64,000 bases of DNA from Scyliorhinus canicula (taxonomy: Eukaryota), in the NCBI RefSeq assembly GCF_902713615.1, contig NC_052169.1, forward strand, positions 3,994,915 to 4,058,914, read 5' to 3'. The notes under the pieces were generated by a model, which did not search any database, was not told the DNA's origin, and saw only the letters and a program-made list of their open reading frames with translations. This document shows positions 8,396 to 26,641 of this stretch, piece by piece. The position numbers and the translations under genes are program-made. Position 1 is the stretch's first letter; each line of letters starts with the position of its first letter.

Positions 8396-9139
8396 GTAAG
8401 GAGATGTTGTGTTCCTTTGAAAAGTAAGAACATTTGCAACAAGAATTAAGTTGCAGGATTTGTCCTTAAAAGTCATCGAGGTTTCCAGCATGAAAATGTT
8501 GACTATCTATGCCCCTCATTATTTTCTAGACCTCGATAAAATGGGATAGCTTGATCTTGGTTTCGGACAATACTCGGCACAACATCGAGTGCTGAAGGGC
8601 CTGTTCTGTGCTGTACTGTTCTATGTTCTATAAGATCACCCCAAAGCCTACGTGACAAACATATATGGTCAGTTGTCACATGAGGGTGAACACTGCAACT
8701 TGTAATTGAAAAAATATTTGAATGTGCTTCATATTTCCTGGTTACATTGACACTCTGCACCCTCAATAAATACTAGTGTGTGTAGTGCAGAGACTGGCTG
8801 ATAGTTTAGAAGAGTGTTAACTCACACAAGCTGGGCTATATTTTGCTACTTTGACAATGTTAGTGATAAAATTTGTGTGAGTTCTTCACTAACAGTAGGC
8901 AGAGGAAAATACTACCTCTTTGACTGTGTTTCATATTCCCCTTTCCCTCTTTGAAACAAGTGTATGGTGGTCTCTTGTTACAGTGTGAAAACTTTGTGAA
9001 CATAGATTGCCCCTTTGCTTAAACGATCATACAGAAAAATGGTATATGTTTGTTACGTGACCTTTGATCATATCAGAAATACCTTGTTATCGTTTTTAAT
9101 TTTTGTTGAAAATGCTCTTTCAAACTTTGTTGCAGTAGG

Positions 9140-9672
9140 TTTGGCACAGTGGTTAGCACTGCTGCCTCACAGCACCAGACACATGGATTTGATTCCCACC
9201 TTGGGTGACTGTGGAGTTTGCACATTCTTCCCATGTCTGCTTGGGTTTCCTTTGGTTGCTCCGGTTTCCTACCACAGTCCAAGTATTTTTTAAAATAAAT
9301 TTAGAGTACCCAATTATTTTTCTCAATTAAGGGGCAATTTAGCGTGGCCAATCCACCTACCTTGCACATCTTTGGGTTCTGGGCATGAAACCCATGCAGA
9401 CACGGGGAGAATGTGCAAACTCCACACGGACAGTGACCCAGGGCTGGGATTCGAATCGGGGTCCTCAGCGCCGTAGGCAGTGGTTACACTGTGTCACCAT
9501 GCTGCCCTCCCACAGTCCAAAGATGTGCAGGTTAGATGAATTGGCCATGCTAAATTGTTCCTAGATTGGTTTACATGGATAGGGTGGGATATTCGGGTGA
9601 TGTAGGGTGCTCTTTCAGAGGGTTGGTGCAAATGATGGGCTGAATAGCCTCCTCCACTGTAGGGATTCTATC
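9140..9672 (+). mobile_element. HE1 SINE with an antisense HE1 SINE nested at about 9285-9507
   Basis: The host SINE resumes after the insert; TSD CCACAGTCCAA at 9272-9282 and 9510-9520. Confidence 0.8.
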
Positions 9673-18981: not shown

Positions 18982-19642
18982 CTGAAAGGAAAACAAACAA
19001 TCATCAAAATCAGTAAAGAAGGAAATCTGCACCTGAACTATTTCTATTTGGGTGGGTGGGAGGCAAGGCAGAGCTTTCTGTGGGTATAGGAGGTGGCATT
19101 ACTCTTCCTGGCCTCAGCTGGCTGTACAACACCTACAAGAGGATGAAAGAGTGCGGCTCACACTCCATTTGTACCTTAAATTGGAAACTGTTTTAGGTGT
19201 GCCATGTGACCCTGACTTGCCTATTACTGTAACAGACACCATGGCTACCCTGCTTTCATTCAGTCGATATATGATTGAATCAGGGTGTCAGCTTAGCAGT
19301 ACATTTACTGCTCCCACTTTATGCTGGACAGAGCGAGTTAAAATTAGTTGCGTCCTAGCAGCTAATTCCCTTATACACACACACATTCTTCACCAGAGAC
19401 CAATTACAGTTCTTGAACTGTTGGCCCAGTTGTGTTTGATGAATCACTGACTAGAAATCAAACCTGGTCCCTTGATCAATTTAGATTTAGTATTCGCAAT
19501 AGCATTTCATTTCTCAGAAACCATATATCTGACTTAGTGTCCCTCTCTGCTCCTGCTCAGGTTATAGATATGATTAAATCGTGTTTCAGTTAAAGTGTGC
19601 GTTAGTGAAAGAAGAAGAGCCATTAAATTCTGTTCACCATAC

Positions 19643-19731
19643 CTCACAAAGTCAGGCGATCTGGAGATGACATGCTGAAATTCTGAGAGATTCACAGTCC
19701 CATCTTTATCAATATCGGCTTCTTCCAAAAT
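19643..19731 (-). CDS. CIB1: CIB1 coding exon 6 (EF-hand 4)
   Basis: 89 nt, AG/GT; ILEEADIDKDGTVNLSEFQHVISRSPDFV. Confidence 0.97.
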
Positions 19732-20055
19732 CTGGGTGACACAGTAAGTATATTTAAAGTATTTTTAAAGTGGGTCAGGCATACACCCATGTCACTCCCA
19801 GATGCTAAAGTGACAAAACCATCTTAAAAAAGGAGAATGAAAGCTAGTCATTTAATTCTGGATTTTTCCAACCTGGATCTTGAAATTTATAGCTAGCGAC
19901 AGTTAACCTGAATGTGTTCATTTGCTAGTGGCCTTAAAAGGGTCAAACCAGATTAGCATTGAAACATCACAACCATGCACTGATCAGTAATAACAGTAAT
20001 AAACTAGTACTTTAAATGTGCTAAAGTCAGCATTTTATACATAGAAATTGTTTTT

Positions 20056-20390: not shown

Positions 20391-21838
20391 TACCCAATAT
20401 TCACAGAATATTGATTAGTTACACACACACACAAGGCAAACTGCCTCTTGTTTCTAATTTTAATATCTGCCCTTTGACACTTGCCACCAATCCTCCATTG
20501 GTCATGAAGCTTGAGATGGTATGGCAAATCACACAGCCACTGTCTATGCTAGTAGGCTTATTACATAGTCACGGCAGTGGTTTTCATGTGGAAATAGACA
20601 AAATCTCAATGGCACATACAGAAACTTTAAAAAAAAATACAAAGCCCCATAACTCCATATAATGGAATTTATCAGTAACATTTTGTTTAAAAAACAGCAC
20701 CCCACCTAGGCTTGTATCCCCACCCTATCCCCATAAATGCACCTAGCCTTTTTGGACACTAAGGAGCAACTTAGCATGGTCAATTCACCTAACCCGCACA
20801 CTTTCTGGACCCTAGGAGGAAACCGGAGCACCCGCTGGGAGAAAGTTCAAACACCACACAGATAGTCACGGCCAGAATTGAACCCAGCTGTGAGGCACAT
20901 TCTTAACCGCTGTGCCGCCCCTTAACATCAGTAACATAAGTCCTTGGTTTTGAAGCTATAAAATCACGGTCAACTACTTGTGGAATCAAGGGTATCAGAA
21001 TTAATATCCTACTAGCTGCAACTAAACTAAGAGACCAGACACAGTAGCCTCACATCAACCAGAGGCTCTGTTCCTCGTCACTGATGTTGCCAGATATTGA
21101 GTGTTTCCAACATCTGCAGTATTTTACTTTTGTTGCAGTTTCTAATGTGAGGGAGGTCGAAACCTTGAATATACCAAGGATCCAACCATTAGAATATATT
21201 TAATTCTTGGGAGGACTGAATTCATATATAAAATTAAAATTATTTTGCATCAAAGTAACCCACTAGGAACTCCCATGAAATGAACTGCTTACTGTAACTT
21301 GTGAAATCCCAGCTGATTTTCTTACTGAAGCAGTGAATGATTTGCTGAATTCTGTCCTTCACTACCACAAACCTCCGGTAGGTTCCATAACAACTGCCTT
21401 TGAAAATTACTGTCCGACGGGTATAAAGAAAGTTACTTATTCCTGTACAACTGTTGTTCATTATAAAACAGAAATTTATCTCCAGTTTAATATGGTTATC
21501 AGTCATTCATAGGCCAGTGACTCCTGTTGAAAGTGTGCATGTTGTTTGGACATGGACCTAGCTTGGTTGGTGTGCTTCTTCTACTTAGCTTGTGAATGTT
21601 AGCAGACTGCTCACAAAGAATGGATACCTGGGCTAGGTACTGGAAACTTGTGTACCCATAACCCAGCTACAATATGTATTGCAGAAGAGAGGAGAAGATT
21701 CAGACAAAGGTGTTTGGGGGGGGTAAGGAACTTAATTTATGCACAGCAAATAAGAATAAGCTGACAAGCCTATGTTTGTGGCTATTTGAAAACACTCACA
21801 CGAGTGCCTTATCTGAGTCGTTACGTGGTTCATCCACA

Positions 21839-24500
21839 TTTTTTAAACGTCTAGCATTGCCACAGCAAGGAGGGGCTATTCCATTTATGTTGAGGACAGG
21901 GGTGGTAGGAATCACTGGAGTCACAGATTTGGGCTGACTCTGCCGAGGTACCAGGCTTGTTGTTCAGAGGGACACTGGTTAGGGCCGCATCTTCAGTGTT
22001 ATCAGGCGTGTTGTTCAGAGTTTGGAGAAGCACCTAACTGAGCACCGCCTCGGTTAGTTGTTCAAAGACTTTTACCACAAATCTCATCATTTGAATGTGC
22101 CGTAACAACGTCCCGCCACCAAGTAATTAACTGTGCACCAATTATTTGCAAGTCTTCTGCCACCATTTTGCCCCCTGTGTAGGTGCCCACCACATGCTTT
22201 CCTTGATCGGAAGACCACACCTTGGCACCGAGGGTTGGTTTGCCACAACCAGCATGAAGCTGGGCTAGAGAGATGGAATCCAGCTTACTCACCTGTTACT
22301 GAAGATTTGCAGCATTTCAAGCGTCAGGGATATTGAGAGTCTGAAGATTTGCTGGGTGGTTAGCATTGCTGCCTCACGGCACCGAGGACCAGGTTCAATC
22401 CCGGCCTCGGGTCACTGTTCATGTGGAGTTTGCCTTGTTTTAGTCTTCGTACCAGACTGTGACATTGACCAACGCAACTTTGATATTTCCTGGATATGAT
22501 ATTGGGTTTCCATAAGGAACATCTTTGGCCACGAGCTTCGGCTTCTGGTATACTGTCCAGATTAGGGAATTACTGGCATAGTTGTTCCATATCTTGTTTA
22601 ATCCTGACATTATTGGCGCCGAGGTCCCAGGTTCGATCCCGGCTCTGGATCACTGACCATGTGGAGTTTGCACATTCTCCCAGTATTTGCATGTGTTTCG
22701 CCCCCACAAACCAAAGATGTGCAAGGTAGGTGGATTGAACACACTAAATTGCCCCTTAATTGGAAAAAAATTAATTGGGTACACTAAATTTTTTTTTTTT
22801 AAATCCTTACATTATTTACACACGGGCAGCAACCAAAAATGTGAGCGAGAGTTTCATTTGGAGCCTCGCACCTCTGACATGATTGACAGTATTTTATTGG
22901 CCCCTTGTAAGGGTCATCCGTGTGGAAATAGATTACATCAAAGTAATAGACTATTGATTAGGCAAAACCAACAGGTTCTGTTCATCCCGACGGGAGGATC
23001 ACTTAGAAGGGCAATGTCATCCGCGAAGGCCAATCAGAGCGGTTGACTCATCTGCGGCCCCAGGATCATGGTTGCTCTTCTCCGGGGAGCATACCAGAGG
23101 ATCCCATGCAATGTTAAATAGTATTTAAAAATTTTTTTCCTGTCTTTTCTTTGCACCGGTGTAACTATTGCACTTCTGTCTTGTTATTTATTTTCTGACC
23201 TCGGGGATTGGCCCCTGCTCATCAGTGATACTCTCCACTAGCCCAATGCCCTGAGCCCGGCTGTCGGGGTTGTCCTTCGTGTCCATGAGGACCTCGGATT
23301 GAGTGAGCTGATCATCTACGACCCAATGTTTCGGGATGGTAGCTGGAGGTCTTGTTGGATGTGGGCCCAACCAGTCAGGGTTGCTGGTCTCTCCTTGTGG
23401 CTCGGTTTCTGCGAAATCTGGAGTTGTTACTTGGGCCTCCATCTGGGTGTTCTTCAGGTTTCTGTGTTTATCTGAGATTTGCTTTGTCGTTTTTGTTTTA
23501 AGGACACTTGTAATTTCCTTGTTAATATACTGGCGTAGGGGGGCATCCTCCTCCTCGGATCACTTGTAGTCTCTCCTCCCTGGCTCGGACATGGTTTCAA
23601 GGCTTTGAGGCGTTTCTTGTTTCATGGACTGGCATGTCTATGCCTTTCATGCTGGCCGAGACTAATCTTGGTTGTGAACTGTTGTTTGACTCTCTGCATT
23701 GATAGGCCCCTGGTGGAATGGGTTGCCTTTCGCTTCTATATTTAGCGTAGTGGCAAGAGGTAGCGTGGCATTTTTCAGTTTTGCCGCAGCGTGAACGTTT
23801 GGTTCCAAGGTTCTTGACCTGGTGTATTGGTCATATGGATGTTAAATAAGCCGACTGAGGGGAGGAGGGTGTTGTGTAGCCTGCAGAACAACCCGTCAAT
23901 GGGGTGGTGGATAATCACCTGCCTTGATTGTGACCCCTTCAATGAAGGTGGCCGTCTCGGATGTTTCACAGCGTAGTGTTTTGTCGACCTCATTGGTCAT
24001 AGTAATTCTTCTCACGATCAAATTGTTATATTTCTTGTTATAGAAGGTCTGTGTTGTCACATAGGTGAAATGAAATGAAAATCACTTATTGTCACGAGTA
24101 GGCTTCAATGAAGTTACTGTGAAAAGCCCCTAGTTGCCACATTCCGGCGCCTGTTCGGGGAGGCTGGTACGGGAATTGAAGTGTGCCGCTGGCCTGCCTT
24201 GGTCTGCTTTAAAAGCCAGCAATTTAGCCCAGTGTGCTAAACCAGCCCCTTGTCCCAGGTGGCTTGTCCCAGTGGGTGGGCGGCCCACTCGGGCTCTTCT
24301 GTAACAGTGTCCATGTCTTATACTTCTGGTCCTTCTGGCCTGGCATTGGAACTCCGATCCCAATGGGGTCGGTAAAACTGTCTGATGTCCTCCTCCTCGG
24401 TCTGCATGGTGGCAGAACTTGTAACTAGCCTGGCTAATTACACGTTTGTGGCTACTTAATGACCCTCTATAGTACTTCCTTGAGGTAACTGTTGTCCAAC
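21839..24500 (-). mobile_element. Decayed, internally deleted R2-clade non-LTR retrotransposon in CIB1 intron 5
   Basis: Motifs in colinear order on the minus strand: 3 zinc fingers (23918-23605), Myb (23570-23455), RT ILFNIA.DPL and LAFADDIALLSD (23124-22998), CCHC CQRC..ETLAHIFGCCP (22879-22805), RLE KP(D/N)II...V(D/N)VTV.YE (22512-22446). Interrupted by 3 SINEs. Confidence 0.8.
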
Positions 24501-25151
24501 TGTATTTTGATATTTGGAATAACCTGTGCAACGGTGCAGTTACACTAGAAAAGATCATTAAATATTTAAATACATTACTGTCTAATCGCTCCAGCTCTCC
24601 ATTGACAGTGATATTTTCAGAGACCAAGAAGCAGGTTACTGGCCTGCAATATCAGGGGGAAGTTGATGCATGAAGAATGATGAAACCAGACAAAATTATA
24701 GATGAAATAAATAGAGCGAGCTTAATTTAAAACAGCACCTTTCATGACCTCAAGACATAAAGCACTGCGTGGCTGATTGAGGTACTTTAAGTGTAGGCAC
24801 GATTTTAATATAGAAAATGCAGCAGCCAATTTGTGCAAAGCAAATTGGGATTAATATTTACCTTAATATCTCCCTCTAGTGCTCTTCTCTAAACTCTCAC
24901 TGAGCTCATTCCATTGCCTCCGATTCTAATTATTTCCCAGCACCCAGTAACTCTTTCCTTCCTCCTACATCTGCGGGCTTGGGAGGAGGAAGAGAAGACT
25001 GAAGGAAGCACTTCCACAGTTGATATCACTATCTTCTCACTCTGTGGAAAGTCAGTGTTCTGGCTTTGTATCTAGATTTCCAATTTAAATTAAGGACGCT
25101 GTTAGTTTTTAGTGTTAAAATGTGCAGTTTTTCAAGAAGAGTTTCCCTTAC

Positions 25152-25270
25152 GTTTTGAATCAGCTGGTTCATTTCTGCCTCTGACAGTTGAGTATCAGAT
25201 GTGCCTCCTGTCAGACAATTCACCAAGTTCTTCAAATCCTCTTTGTCTAAAGTGCCGTCATCATCAAAAT
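25152..25270 (-). CDS. CIB1: CIB1 coding exon 5 (EF-hand 3)
   Basis: 119 nt, AG/GT; DFDDDGTLDKEDLKNLVNCLTGGTSDTQLSEAEMNQLIQN. Confidence 0.97.
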
Positions 25271-26641
25271 CTGTAAGCAAGTGTCAAAAGAATGAATGTT
25301 TTAAACACATGTTCTACATTAAGTCAGTATCAGTCACAGACCACAGCTACAATCTTTTCTCATGGAGCTAACTCTGAAACATTCCCATCATGCTGTGCGG
25401 CATAAGGGACAGCACGGTGGCACAGTGGTTAGCATTGCTGCCTACGGCGCTGAGGACCTGGGTTCGAATCCCGGCCCTGGGTCACTGTCCGTGTGGAGTT
25501 TGCACATTCTCGTGTCTGCGTGGGTTTCACCCCCACAACCCAAAGATGTGCAGGGTAGGTGGATTGGCCACGCTAAATTGCCCCTTAATTGGAAAAAATA
25601 TTGGGTACTCTAAATTTTTAAGTTTTTTTTAAATGCTGTGCGGCATATAGGTGGGCTCATACATGTACCCATGTGCTCTCCATCTTAATCCACTGTGCAG
25701 AGGTCAGACAGTTTCCCTGCAGGGACAGGATCAGAGAGCGATAAAGATCTGTATGTTTCTACTGAAGTCCTGGACTTTGATGTGATACCAGCCATCCCCC
25801 AGTGCCTTCCCACATGGTCAATTCTACATTTTGAGCTTACACAGCGAGTGTTAACAGATGATATGGAATTTAGTGAGGAAGGTCACTTATCCAGTATGCA
25901 CATTGCCAACAAAAATCATTGTATGGCAATCGGAGCGGGTGTTATGAAGATGTCCAAACCATATCCCACTTCCTAATGTGCCCAATCATTGTTCCCCATC
26001 TACCATATTGGCTGAGAACAATTAATTCAGCTACTTAACTTTGCTTTAACCTTTTAATAGAGGGCAGTCAGTTGGTCCCTAAATACAACATAGGAATTCT
26101 CTTATTTTTCCTCTTATGAAAATGAAATGAAATGAAAATCACTTATTGTCACAAGTAGGCTTCAAATGAAGTTGTGAAAAGCCCCTAGTTGCCACATTCC
26201 CGCACCTGTTCGGGGAGGCTGGTACGGGAATTGAACCGTGCTGCTGTCCTGCCTTGGTCTGCTTTCAAAGCCAGTGATTTAGTCCTGTGCTAAACCAGCC
26301 CCACTCTGGGAACACAGGGCTCAGCACTGAATCTGAACTTTGTCAGGAACCCACAGAGAAACAGACCTACGTATAGATGCTCAGAGACGTGTCTACCAGG
26401 GTGGCCTGCAAGTGGACCTCATTGTATTGCAGGAGCACTGCACTGAATGTCCTTTAGGGAAGGAAATCTACAGTCCTTATGTGGTCTGGCGTACATGTGA
26501 CTCTAGACCCACATCAATGTAATTGACTCTTACCTACCCCCTCAAGGGCAATTAGGGATGGGCAATAAATTCCCAGCCTGTGATGCCCACGTCCAATGAA
26601 TGAATAAAAAGGTCTAACCCCGCCTAAAAGATCAGACTAAC

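Follow-up and report, generated by a model that had tools for sequence, protein, structure and literature searches.

Probable off-target insertion of an A-lineage R2 retrotransposon in a shark CIB1 intron

How does an R2 retrotransposon, whose protein normally recognises one site in the 28S ribosomal DNA (rDNA), come to lie in an intron of CIB1? The question is raised by a 64,000-nucleotide stretch of the genome of Scyliorhinus canicula (NC_052169.1, positions 3,994,915 to 4,058,914; hereafter the window), in which the minus strand from 24443 to 21785 holds the decayed remains of such an element. Our answer, to which we give a probability of about 0.8, is that we have here the dead remains, with internal deletions, of a shark R2 copy of the A lineage, made by off-target insertion at a 28S-like site. 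The first-pass annotation, based on the sequence alone, had described an R2 relic here and had offered two origins for it, a rare ectopic insertion or a lineage that had lost its target specificity; the low copy number, a target duplication that begins at TAGCC and a host flank that mimics 28S favour the first of these, and the second is not favoured.

On this reading, the R2 protein would have bound a look-alike site in the CIB1 intron, with GGAAGTA at -25..-19, TTAAG directly upstream of the nick and TAGCCA directly downstream. The bottom strand would have been nicked at G|TAGCC (the bar marks the nick), with reverse transcription of the R2 RNA primed there. The copy would then have been joined without its 5' untranslated region (UTR) and first ~50 codons, and a break of the top strand 11 bp downstream would have given rise to the duplication of TAGCCACAAAC.

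Identity and state of the relic

The relic was identified through its protein relatives. All peptides quoted in the first-pass annotation were recovered by three-frame translation of 21700-24700, on the minus strand and in the positions and order given there. A 123-aa piece with the Myb-like domain and spacer (23191-23559, minus strand) matched a cloudy-catshark protein, the matches to shark proteins in billion-sequence libraries having E values of 1e-14 to 1e-23. A two-sequence profile made from it found ten further proteins among 1.8 billion (E down to 5e-23), most of them 'hypothetical proteins' of the bamboo shark Chiloscyllium punctatum, encoded on scaffolds of 0.1-11 Mb. One profile match, P0004 (779 aa), is encoded on a metagenome contig, L001. 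It aligns with the A-clade protein R2Tg of the zebra finch, for which a structure has been solved, at E 3e-107 (362 bits), covering the three zinc fingers, Myb and the reverse transcriptase (RT), as against E 1.6e-38 (136 bits) for the D-clade R2Bm and about 1e-19 for L1 ORF2p; the clades were compared on this relative, the relic being too broken for a tree. L001 starts in genuine 28S (Rfam large-subunit rRNA (LSU) model, E 4.7e-26), with 43 nt identical to 28S up to ...CTCTTAAGG|T, which is the canonical R2 site. Because P0004 matches R2Tg and L001 represents an insertion at the canonical 28S site, the family of the relic is a bona fide R2 of the A lineage, and the architecture proposed for the relic (three zinc fingers, Myb, RT, CCHC and restriction-like endonuclease (RLE)) is supported. 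If R2 is defined by homology together with the conserved 28S site TTAAGG|TAGCC (PMC13188248), the family counts as R2 through L001; the CIB1 copy itself lies elsewhere.

Since the single decayed pieces are too short, full-length relatives were used for alignment. P0004, P0012 (catshark, 921 aa), P0003, P0005 and P0010 are collinear with the window across the frameshifts in tblastn, with a sum E of 3e-31 in a pooled database of the window and the loci and of 6e-27 for the element region alone, and the relic has about 42% protein identity to the retrieved shark R2 proteins. A DNA alignment to the full-length bamboo-shark copy L004 (9689-13985) was the source for the last codons and for the end of the 3' UTR (21824-21803). 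Taken singly, the CCHC piece has R2 proteins as its three best matches in PDB, near their C-termini as expected. A Pfam search with ten window pieces gave zf-RVT alone, on the CCHC piece and below the cut-off (E 0.001), and phmmer against PDB with the single RLE, ZF2 and Myb/spacer pieces (ZF, zinc finger) gave nothing useful. A further R2-like open reading frame (ORF), intact over 1231 aa and 30% identical to P0004, was seen in the Logan contig L005 (1-4132; protein P0014); its CCHC and KPD...D are intact, it ends in a 22-nt poly(A), and no 28S is visible at either contig end.

In the order of the element, the region reads as follows, with the short interspersed nuclear elements (SINEs) that entered it:

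24455..24479, minus strand: host flank upstream of the nick, GGAAGTACTATAGAGGGTCATTAAG, which mimics 28S -25..-1
24444..24454, minus strand: 5' copy of the target-site duplication, TAGCCACAAAC (28S from +1: TAGCCAAATGCC)
24418..24443, minus strand: 5' junction sequence of 26 nt, filler or diverged R2; no homology found
24273..24416, minus strand: what is left of the N-terminal ORF, corresponding to P0004 residues 57-109
24066..24250, minus strand: tRNA-derived SINE in the N-terminal region, at very high depth
23832..24060, minus strand: N-terminal segment before the fingers, and ZF1 (23948-23832); P0004 159-197, P0005 65-109
23574..23830, minus strand: ZF2 (23824-23690) and ZF3 (23684-23574), split by frameshifts; P0004 201-274, P0003 4-37
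23143..23559, minus strand: Myb-like domain, with a gap of 9 residues, and spacer, bounded by the first large deletion; P0012 5-181, E 1e-25
22977..23124, minus strand: RT motifs 4 and 5 (ILFNIAWDPLV and LAFADDIALLSD); P0012 472-489 and 506-524
22802..22961, minus strand: end of the linker and CCHC knuckle CQRCEAPNETLAHIFGCC, from the P0012 alignment and the R2 matches in PDB
22615..22801, plus strand: 5'-truncated SINE, with a 15-bp target duplication at 22802-22816 and 22600-22614
22447..22614, minus strand: RLE region; L004 13349-13434
22352..22435, plus strand: SINE fragment replacing about 210 nt of the C-terminal ORF, from depth and the L004 alignment
22294..22342, minus strand: last ORF codons; L004 13646-13694
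21785..22293, minus strand: 3' UTR, ending in ...GACTCAGATAAGGCACTCGTGTGAGTGTTTTCAAA, from 3'-terminal homology with bamboo-shark copies
21774..21784, minus strand: 3' copy of the target-site duplication, TAGCCACAAAC, an exact repeat of the 5' copy

The three N-terminal zinc fingers and Myb follow one another in the alignment as they do in P0004 159-334, a stretch that itself aligns to R2Tg 220-392. Mutations have struck several of the zinc ligands: ZF1 has lost its second Cys and last His (CRLH...HM) and ZF2 its first and last Cys, while ZF3 retains FTTKISLGQHERHRH. The first-pass view that most of the RT is deleted holds, as motifs 4 and 5 alone are left; compared with P0012, about 290 residues (RT motifs 0-3) are missing before this piece and about 298 (RT 6-7, thumb and linker) after it. 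What survives is 79% identical over the FADD block and aligns to L004 DNA at E 6.5e-25. The CCHC knuckle is followed by a PD-(D/E)xK endonuclease region aligned to P0012 877-918, in which the aspartates have become Asn (SLWKPNII ... ALVNVTVWYE, compared with SLWKPDLI and VVVDDTV in L004); judged by these residues, the RLE fold is recognisable yet inactive, with Asn now in place of the catalytic Asp. The 5' UTR, the ribozyme and the first ~50 codons are missing, and with them the self-cleaving ribozyme of the hepatitis delta virus (HDV) type, often joined to 28S from -28, by which the 5' end of an R2 can be known. About 60% of the ORF is deleted, stops and frameshifts have accumulated, and the relic encodes nothing.

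The position in a CIB1 intron and outside rDNA, which had also been claimed at the outset, agrees with what lies around the copy. An exon at about 25150-25280 (minus strand) matches CIB1 residues 107-150 (E 5e-13) and the next one, ...DIDKDGTVNLSEFQHVISRSPDF, lies at about 19640-19740 (minus strand); with CIB1 exons on both sides on the minus strand, the relic is within a CIB1 intron in sense orientation. Rfam searches of 21400-24800 and 21560-21830 found no LSU, ribozyme or R2 element, and the LSU model readily detects 28S in L001. The sole Rfam match, on the opposite strand and overlapping the 3' junction of the relic (21701-21821, plus strand), is SNORD94-like with 20 bits against a gathering score of 60, and we take it as chance.

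The three SINE intervals proposed earlier coincide with bins of extremely high depth in every run, and the target duplication of the middle SINE is identical at 14/15 positions. Two more very high-copy SINE pieces, of the same families, flank the region at 20667-20833 and 25343-25500, and a moderately repeated stretch lies at 24675-24952 in the same CIB1 intron (depth 300-1400 compared with about 12 in its neighbours, in three species). Outside the SINEs, the parts of the relic have the depth of the unique flanks at an identity of at least 80%, so the copy is single or low in number. Only the conserved RT/CCHC segment stands out, with a depth 2-5 fold higher, from which we conclude that there are a few other R2 copies in the genome.

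Junctions, insertion site and age

The insert extends from 24443 to 21785, and 24455-24500 is host DNA. At the 5' end, R2-derived sequence starts somewhere from about 24443 to 24418, with homology to the N-terminal ORF from 24416. At the 3' end, four bamboo-shark copies (L004, L126, L127 and L128) finish with sequence of the form ...GACTC.(A/G)AAAAGGCACT..(C/T)G.GTGTT.CAAAA, then TA.., and include GGCACT..GTGTT.CAAAA; homology with them reaches ...GTGAGTGTTTTCAAA at 21785. Because it extends that far, the A run at 21839-21844, which had been taken for the 3' end, is internal to the 3' UTR, and that placement was wrong by 54 bases. The window thus has the family-specific 3' terminus abutting TAGCC (...GGCACTCGTGTGAGTGTTTTCAAA|TAGCC).

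On both sides of the insert stands an exact 11-bp duplication of TAGCCACAAAC (24454-24444 and 21784-21774), which starts at the nick position, at TAGCC. An exact repeat of at least 11 nt in boxes at such spacing occurs in 0.085% of random placements in the window (P = 0.00085). The structure resembles that of a target-primed insertion truncated at its 5' end, with a target duplication of 11 bp.

The site itself was compared with the 28S target ...GGCGGGAGTAACTATGACTCTCTTAAGG|TAGCCAAATGCC..., taken from oligonucleotide tables (10.1101/2024.11.11.623112; PMC13000458); a consensus of 28S from 66 eukaryotic loci served as a check on it. The window reads ...GGAAGTACTATAGAGGGTCATTAAG|TAGCCACAAAC... 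at this place. In fixed register, GGAAGTA at -25..-19 agrees with GGGAGTA of 28S at 6/7 positions with T-20 kept (background P = 0.0016), positions +1..+6 (TAGCCA) are identical to 28S, and TTAAG stands just upstream of the nick. The upstream sequence matches 28S at 13/28 positions, which is the best among the 69 TAGCC sites of the window. The reconstructed empty site scored 132 against the 28S consensus, a score reached by 84/2122 background windows.

Comparison with other species supports the first-pass view that the relic is old. In organism C, a second species, the same relic stands at the same locus with the same SINEs and deletions, which shows that the relic had reached its present state before organisms A and C diverged. 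The two sequences differ by 3.7-4.8% in the flanking intron and by 7.6% inside the relic (22802-24062); one guess is that this excess stems from CpG decay of the then-young insert. In organism D, a third species, the flanks differ by about 12-14% and the site is apparently empty: in one contig, 21716-21787 and 24492-24842 are separated by 32 nt, and 34 nt are predicted if the flank is host DNA and one repeat stands beside it. The insertion apparently dates between the splits of organisms C and D, unless D lost the relic by recombination between the repeats. In organism B, one low-depth contig of 265 nt joins 21371-21489 directly to 23558-23703 with no differences from the window, and is probably an assembly chimera.

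Several points weigh against an off-target insertion. Taken alone, the CIB1 site has a modest likeness to 28S (P about 0.01 to 0.03 for 13/28 without gaps), this likeness is not significant beyond -25..+11 against the 66-locus consensus, and stringent scoring places the core of the site in the top 2% only. T-6, one of four key RASIN positions defined for R2Bm, is not matched. The canonical second-strand nick of R2 is 2 bp upstream and yields no duplication, so the 11-bp duplication requires a non-canonical second break. The empty allele rests on one contig of depth 3.3, the 32 central letters of which are unread, and the source R2 lineage in the rDNA of the window species was not identified. 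A 28S pseudogene fragment at the site was also considered and is not claimed, since the extended likeness of the flanks is not significant and Rfam sees no 28S.

Ectopic relatives and competing explanations

In C. punctatum, copies with 66-89% identity to L004 lie at six or more loci, on separate large scaffolds, and five of these loci (L003, L004, L126, L127 and L128) were compared with the window. The copies with a complete 5' end, L003, L004 and L126, open with a 28S leader that is almost perfect and has its start exactly at -28, after flanks that are unrelated, and L128 has a perfect 24-nt 28S stretch and then a leader from about -26. As -28 is the commonest cleavage site of R2 ribozymes (PMC3774820), the bamboo-shark copies are retro-copies of processed R2 RNA. 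The host flanks before the leaders compare as follows with GGGAGTA of 28S:

L004, -25..-19: GGGAGGA, 6/7
L003, -25..-19: GGGCATA, 5/7
L128, -25..-19: AGGAGTA, 6/7
L126: GGGAGTA, 7/7, three bases further out

If the background frequencies of the five sites taken singly, that of the window among them, are multiplied, with the frequency that allows a shift of ±3 used throughout, the result is about 6e-11. Since the leaders are intact at 23-26 of 24-26 positions while the host flanks are like 28S at 11-15/28, the flanks are not decayed duplicates of the leaders. The 3' flanks of the window and the bamboo-shark copies begin with TAGCC, TAGCA, TAGTC, TATAG and TAAAC, so that 18/25 positions match TAGCC (P = 1e-6), or 8/15 if positions 3-5 alone are counted (P = 0.017).

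Two features of the leaders are worth recording in their own right. In L128 (8780-8900; C. punctatum BEZZ01000052.1) the perfect 24-nt 28S stretch, GGAGTAACTATGACTCTCTTAAGG, stands before the R2 copy with the RNA-type leader directly after it, a tandem duplication of the leader such as has been described for copies in rDNA, yet here outside rDNA, between CCDC92-like and CCDC74-like gene models. The leaders that start at -28 also end early (L003 9118-9141, L004 9686-9709, L126 about 9114-9140), L003 and L004 being without AAGG and L126 without GG, which would point to a small and uniform 5'-junction deletion in the source elements resident in rDNA.

The recurrence of ectopic copies, at no fewer than six bamboo-shark loci and several in the cloudy catshark, could be taken as the mark of a shark R2 lineage in which the specificity for 28S has been lost or much loosened and which spreads in ordinary chromatin, like the flatworm R2NS families. 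As part of the ribozyme, the full-length ectopic copies carry a 28S leader, and they could therefore in principle be processed from any host transcript; the CIB1 copy is sense-oriented in a Pol II intron. However, a non-specific R2 would be expected to have many similar copies with flanks unrelated to 28S, whereas the CIB1 copy is single or low in number at the identity threshold given above and its flanks are 28S-like at the recognition positions. The bamboo-shark copies, which are 80-89% alike, show no sign of a recent burst, and a close relative, that of L001, is in the canonical 28S site. Every ectopic copy examined keeps 28S recognition positions at its site; specificity was therefore exercised and not lost, and we regard a lineage without it as unlikely.

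It is more improbable still that the 28S-like letters were carried by the R2 RNA, as a -28 leader, as an earwig-type 5' duplication of downstream 28S or by 3' read-through, and that the site was arbitrary. The bamboo-shark copies do start with an RNA-borne leader at -28, earwig R2s have 22 bp of downstream 28S at their 5' end (PMC3774820), and in the window the 5' 28S-like stretch starts near -25 and TAATTAG follows the 5' repeat as in 28S. Yet such an origin predicts about 9 nt in the empty allele of organism D, which has about 32, and an extra deletion of ~300 nt, starting exactly at the leader end, would be needed. Both copies of TAGCCACAAAC share the same departures from 28S (TAGCCAAATGCC), which fits a duplication of host DNA and not two independent decays, and the near-intact bamboo-shark leaders next to their much less 28S-like flanks speak against it as well.

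The 28S-like sequence on both sides of the element could also mean that a piece of rDNA already holding an R2 moved to CIB1 at the DNA level as an orphan fragment. This is highly improbable: the Rfam LSU model, by which 28S is easily found in L001, detects nothing in 21400-24800, the 28S likeness stops at about -25 and +11 with no further 28S in the window flanks, and the empty allele has the upstream stretch without the element. That the pieces come from another RLE-bearing clade (NeSL/Utopia, R4 or Hero) or are chance open frames is hardly credible either, for the short pieces score weakly, with zf-RVT alone in Pfam and 4/5 window pieces without an R2 match in PDB, but they are collinear with unambiguous R2-A shark proteins, include a Myb domain and share their 3' terminus with copies that carry a 28S leader.

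Comparison with known R2 systems

The relic itself is functionless junk DNA, and its value is that of a dated natural record of mis-targeting by an A-clade R2. The CIB1 site keeps the positions that structural and cell-culture work has named as off-target determinants of R2Tg, and five bamboo-shark copies keep parts of them; an R2 outside rDNA need not imply a loss of specificity. A-clade R2 proteins are under development for site-specific transgene insertion, and a census of natural mistakes in the genomes of sharks, which evolve slowly, could give an independent off-target logo. It is a possible, though doubtful, extension that shark genomes hold a multi-species archive of natural A-clade R2 off-targets, with GGGAGTA at about -25..-19, TA(GCC) at +1 and, in the full-length ones, a ribozyme-forming 28S leader. 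If this were true, the persistence of shark R2 may lie in part outside rDNA, through transcription along with host introns and release by its own ribozyme, and the archive would provide an evolutionary off-target logo for a protein family used in RNA-templated gene insertion.

In architecture, the relic is the same as the vertebrate A-clade R2s (R2Tg of the zebra finch and R2Pm of a turtle; PDB 9dou, 9nl3, 9nl2) and the chondrichthyan R2s (PMC13188248, Genome Biol 2026). With them it shares the form of the 3' end, ...GTGTT..AAA and then TAGCC, and unlike them it lies outside 28S, without 5' UTR, ribozyme, ~60% of the ORF or catalytic integrity. Homology of the proteins and of the 3' termini places the C. 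punctatum ectopic copies in the same family, and they too lie outside rDNA with the same signature at -25..-19 and from +1; several of them are full length with an RNA-borne 28S leader from -28, whereas the relic is 5'-truncated and has no leader.

The families R2NS-1_SMed and R2NS-1_CSi have many copies, some >98% identical to the consensus, in unrelated flanks (PMC5035012). Like these and the R2-homologous elements of sponges, the relic has R2-type protein sequence and lies outside 28S; unlike the R2NS families, it is solitary and at a 28S-like site.

A closer natural parallel is the non-28S insertion of R2Bm in Bombyx mori (Xiong et al. 1988), re-examined in PMC10499050. Its site has limited overall likeness to 28S but retains the motif of the insertion site and, correctly spaced from it, an upstream recognition motif. 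This is the only natural non-28S copy of R2Bm to have been characterised, and such insertions are described as rare. It resembles the CIB1 relic as a natural R2 outside rDNA at a partly 28S-like site; it differs in being an insect R2 of the D clade, with a single zinc finger and with its upstream motif at -34..-22, where the block of the relic is at -25..-19.

The off-targets of R2Tg in human cells (PMC12222951) have 4-5 nt downstream that match the 3' homology (TAGCC), a match to 28S 19-25 bp upstream, strongest at T-20, and a T/C-rich and then T/A-rich stretch directly upstream. The CIB1 site shows all three features. Those off-targets are experimental, obtained with engineered donors in cultured cells, whereas the relic is a germ-line insertion fixed in a shark lineage, 5'-truncated and with an 11-bp duplication. 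The off-target insertion of R2 is thus an already known phenomenon, and what is new here is a vertebrate A-lineage example from the germ line, together with a small comparative series.

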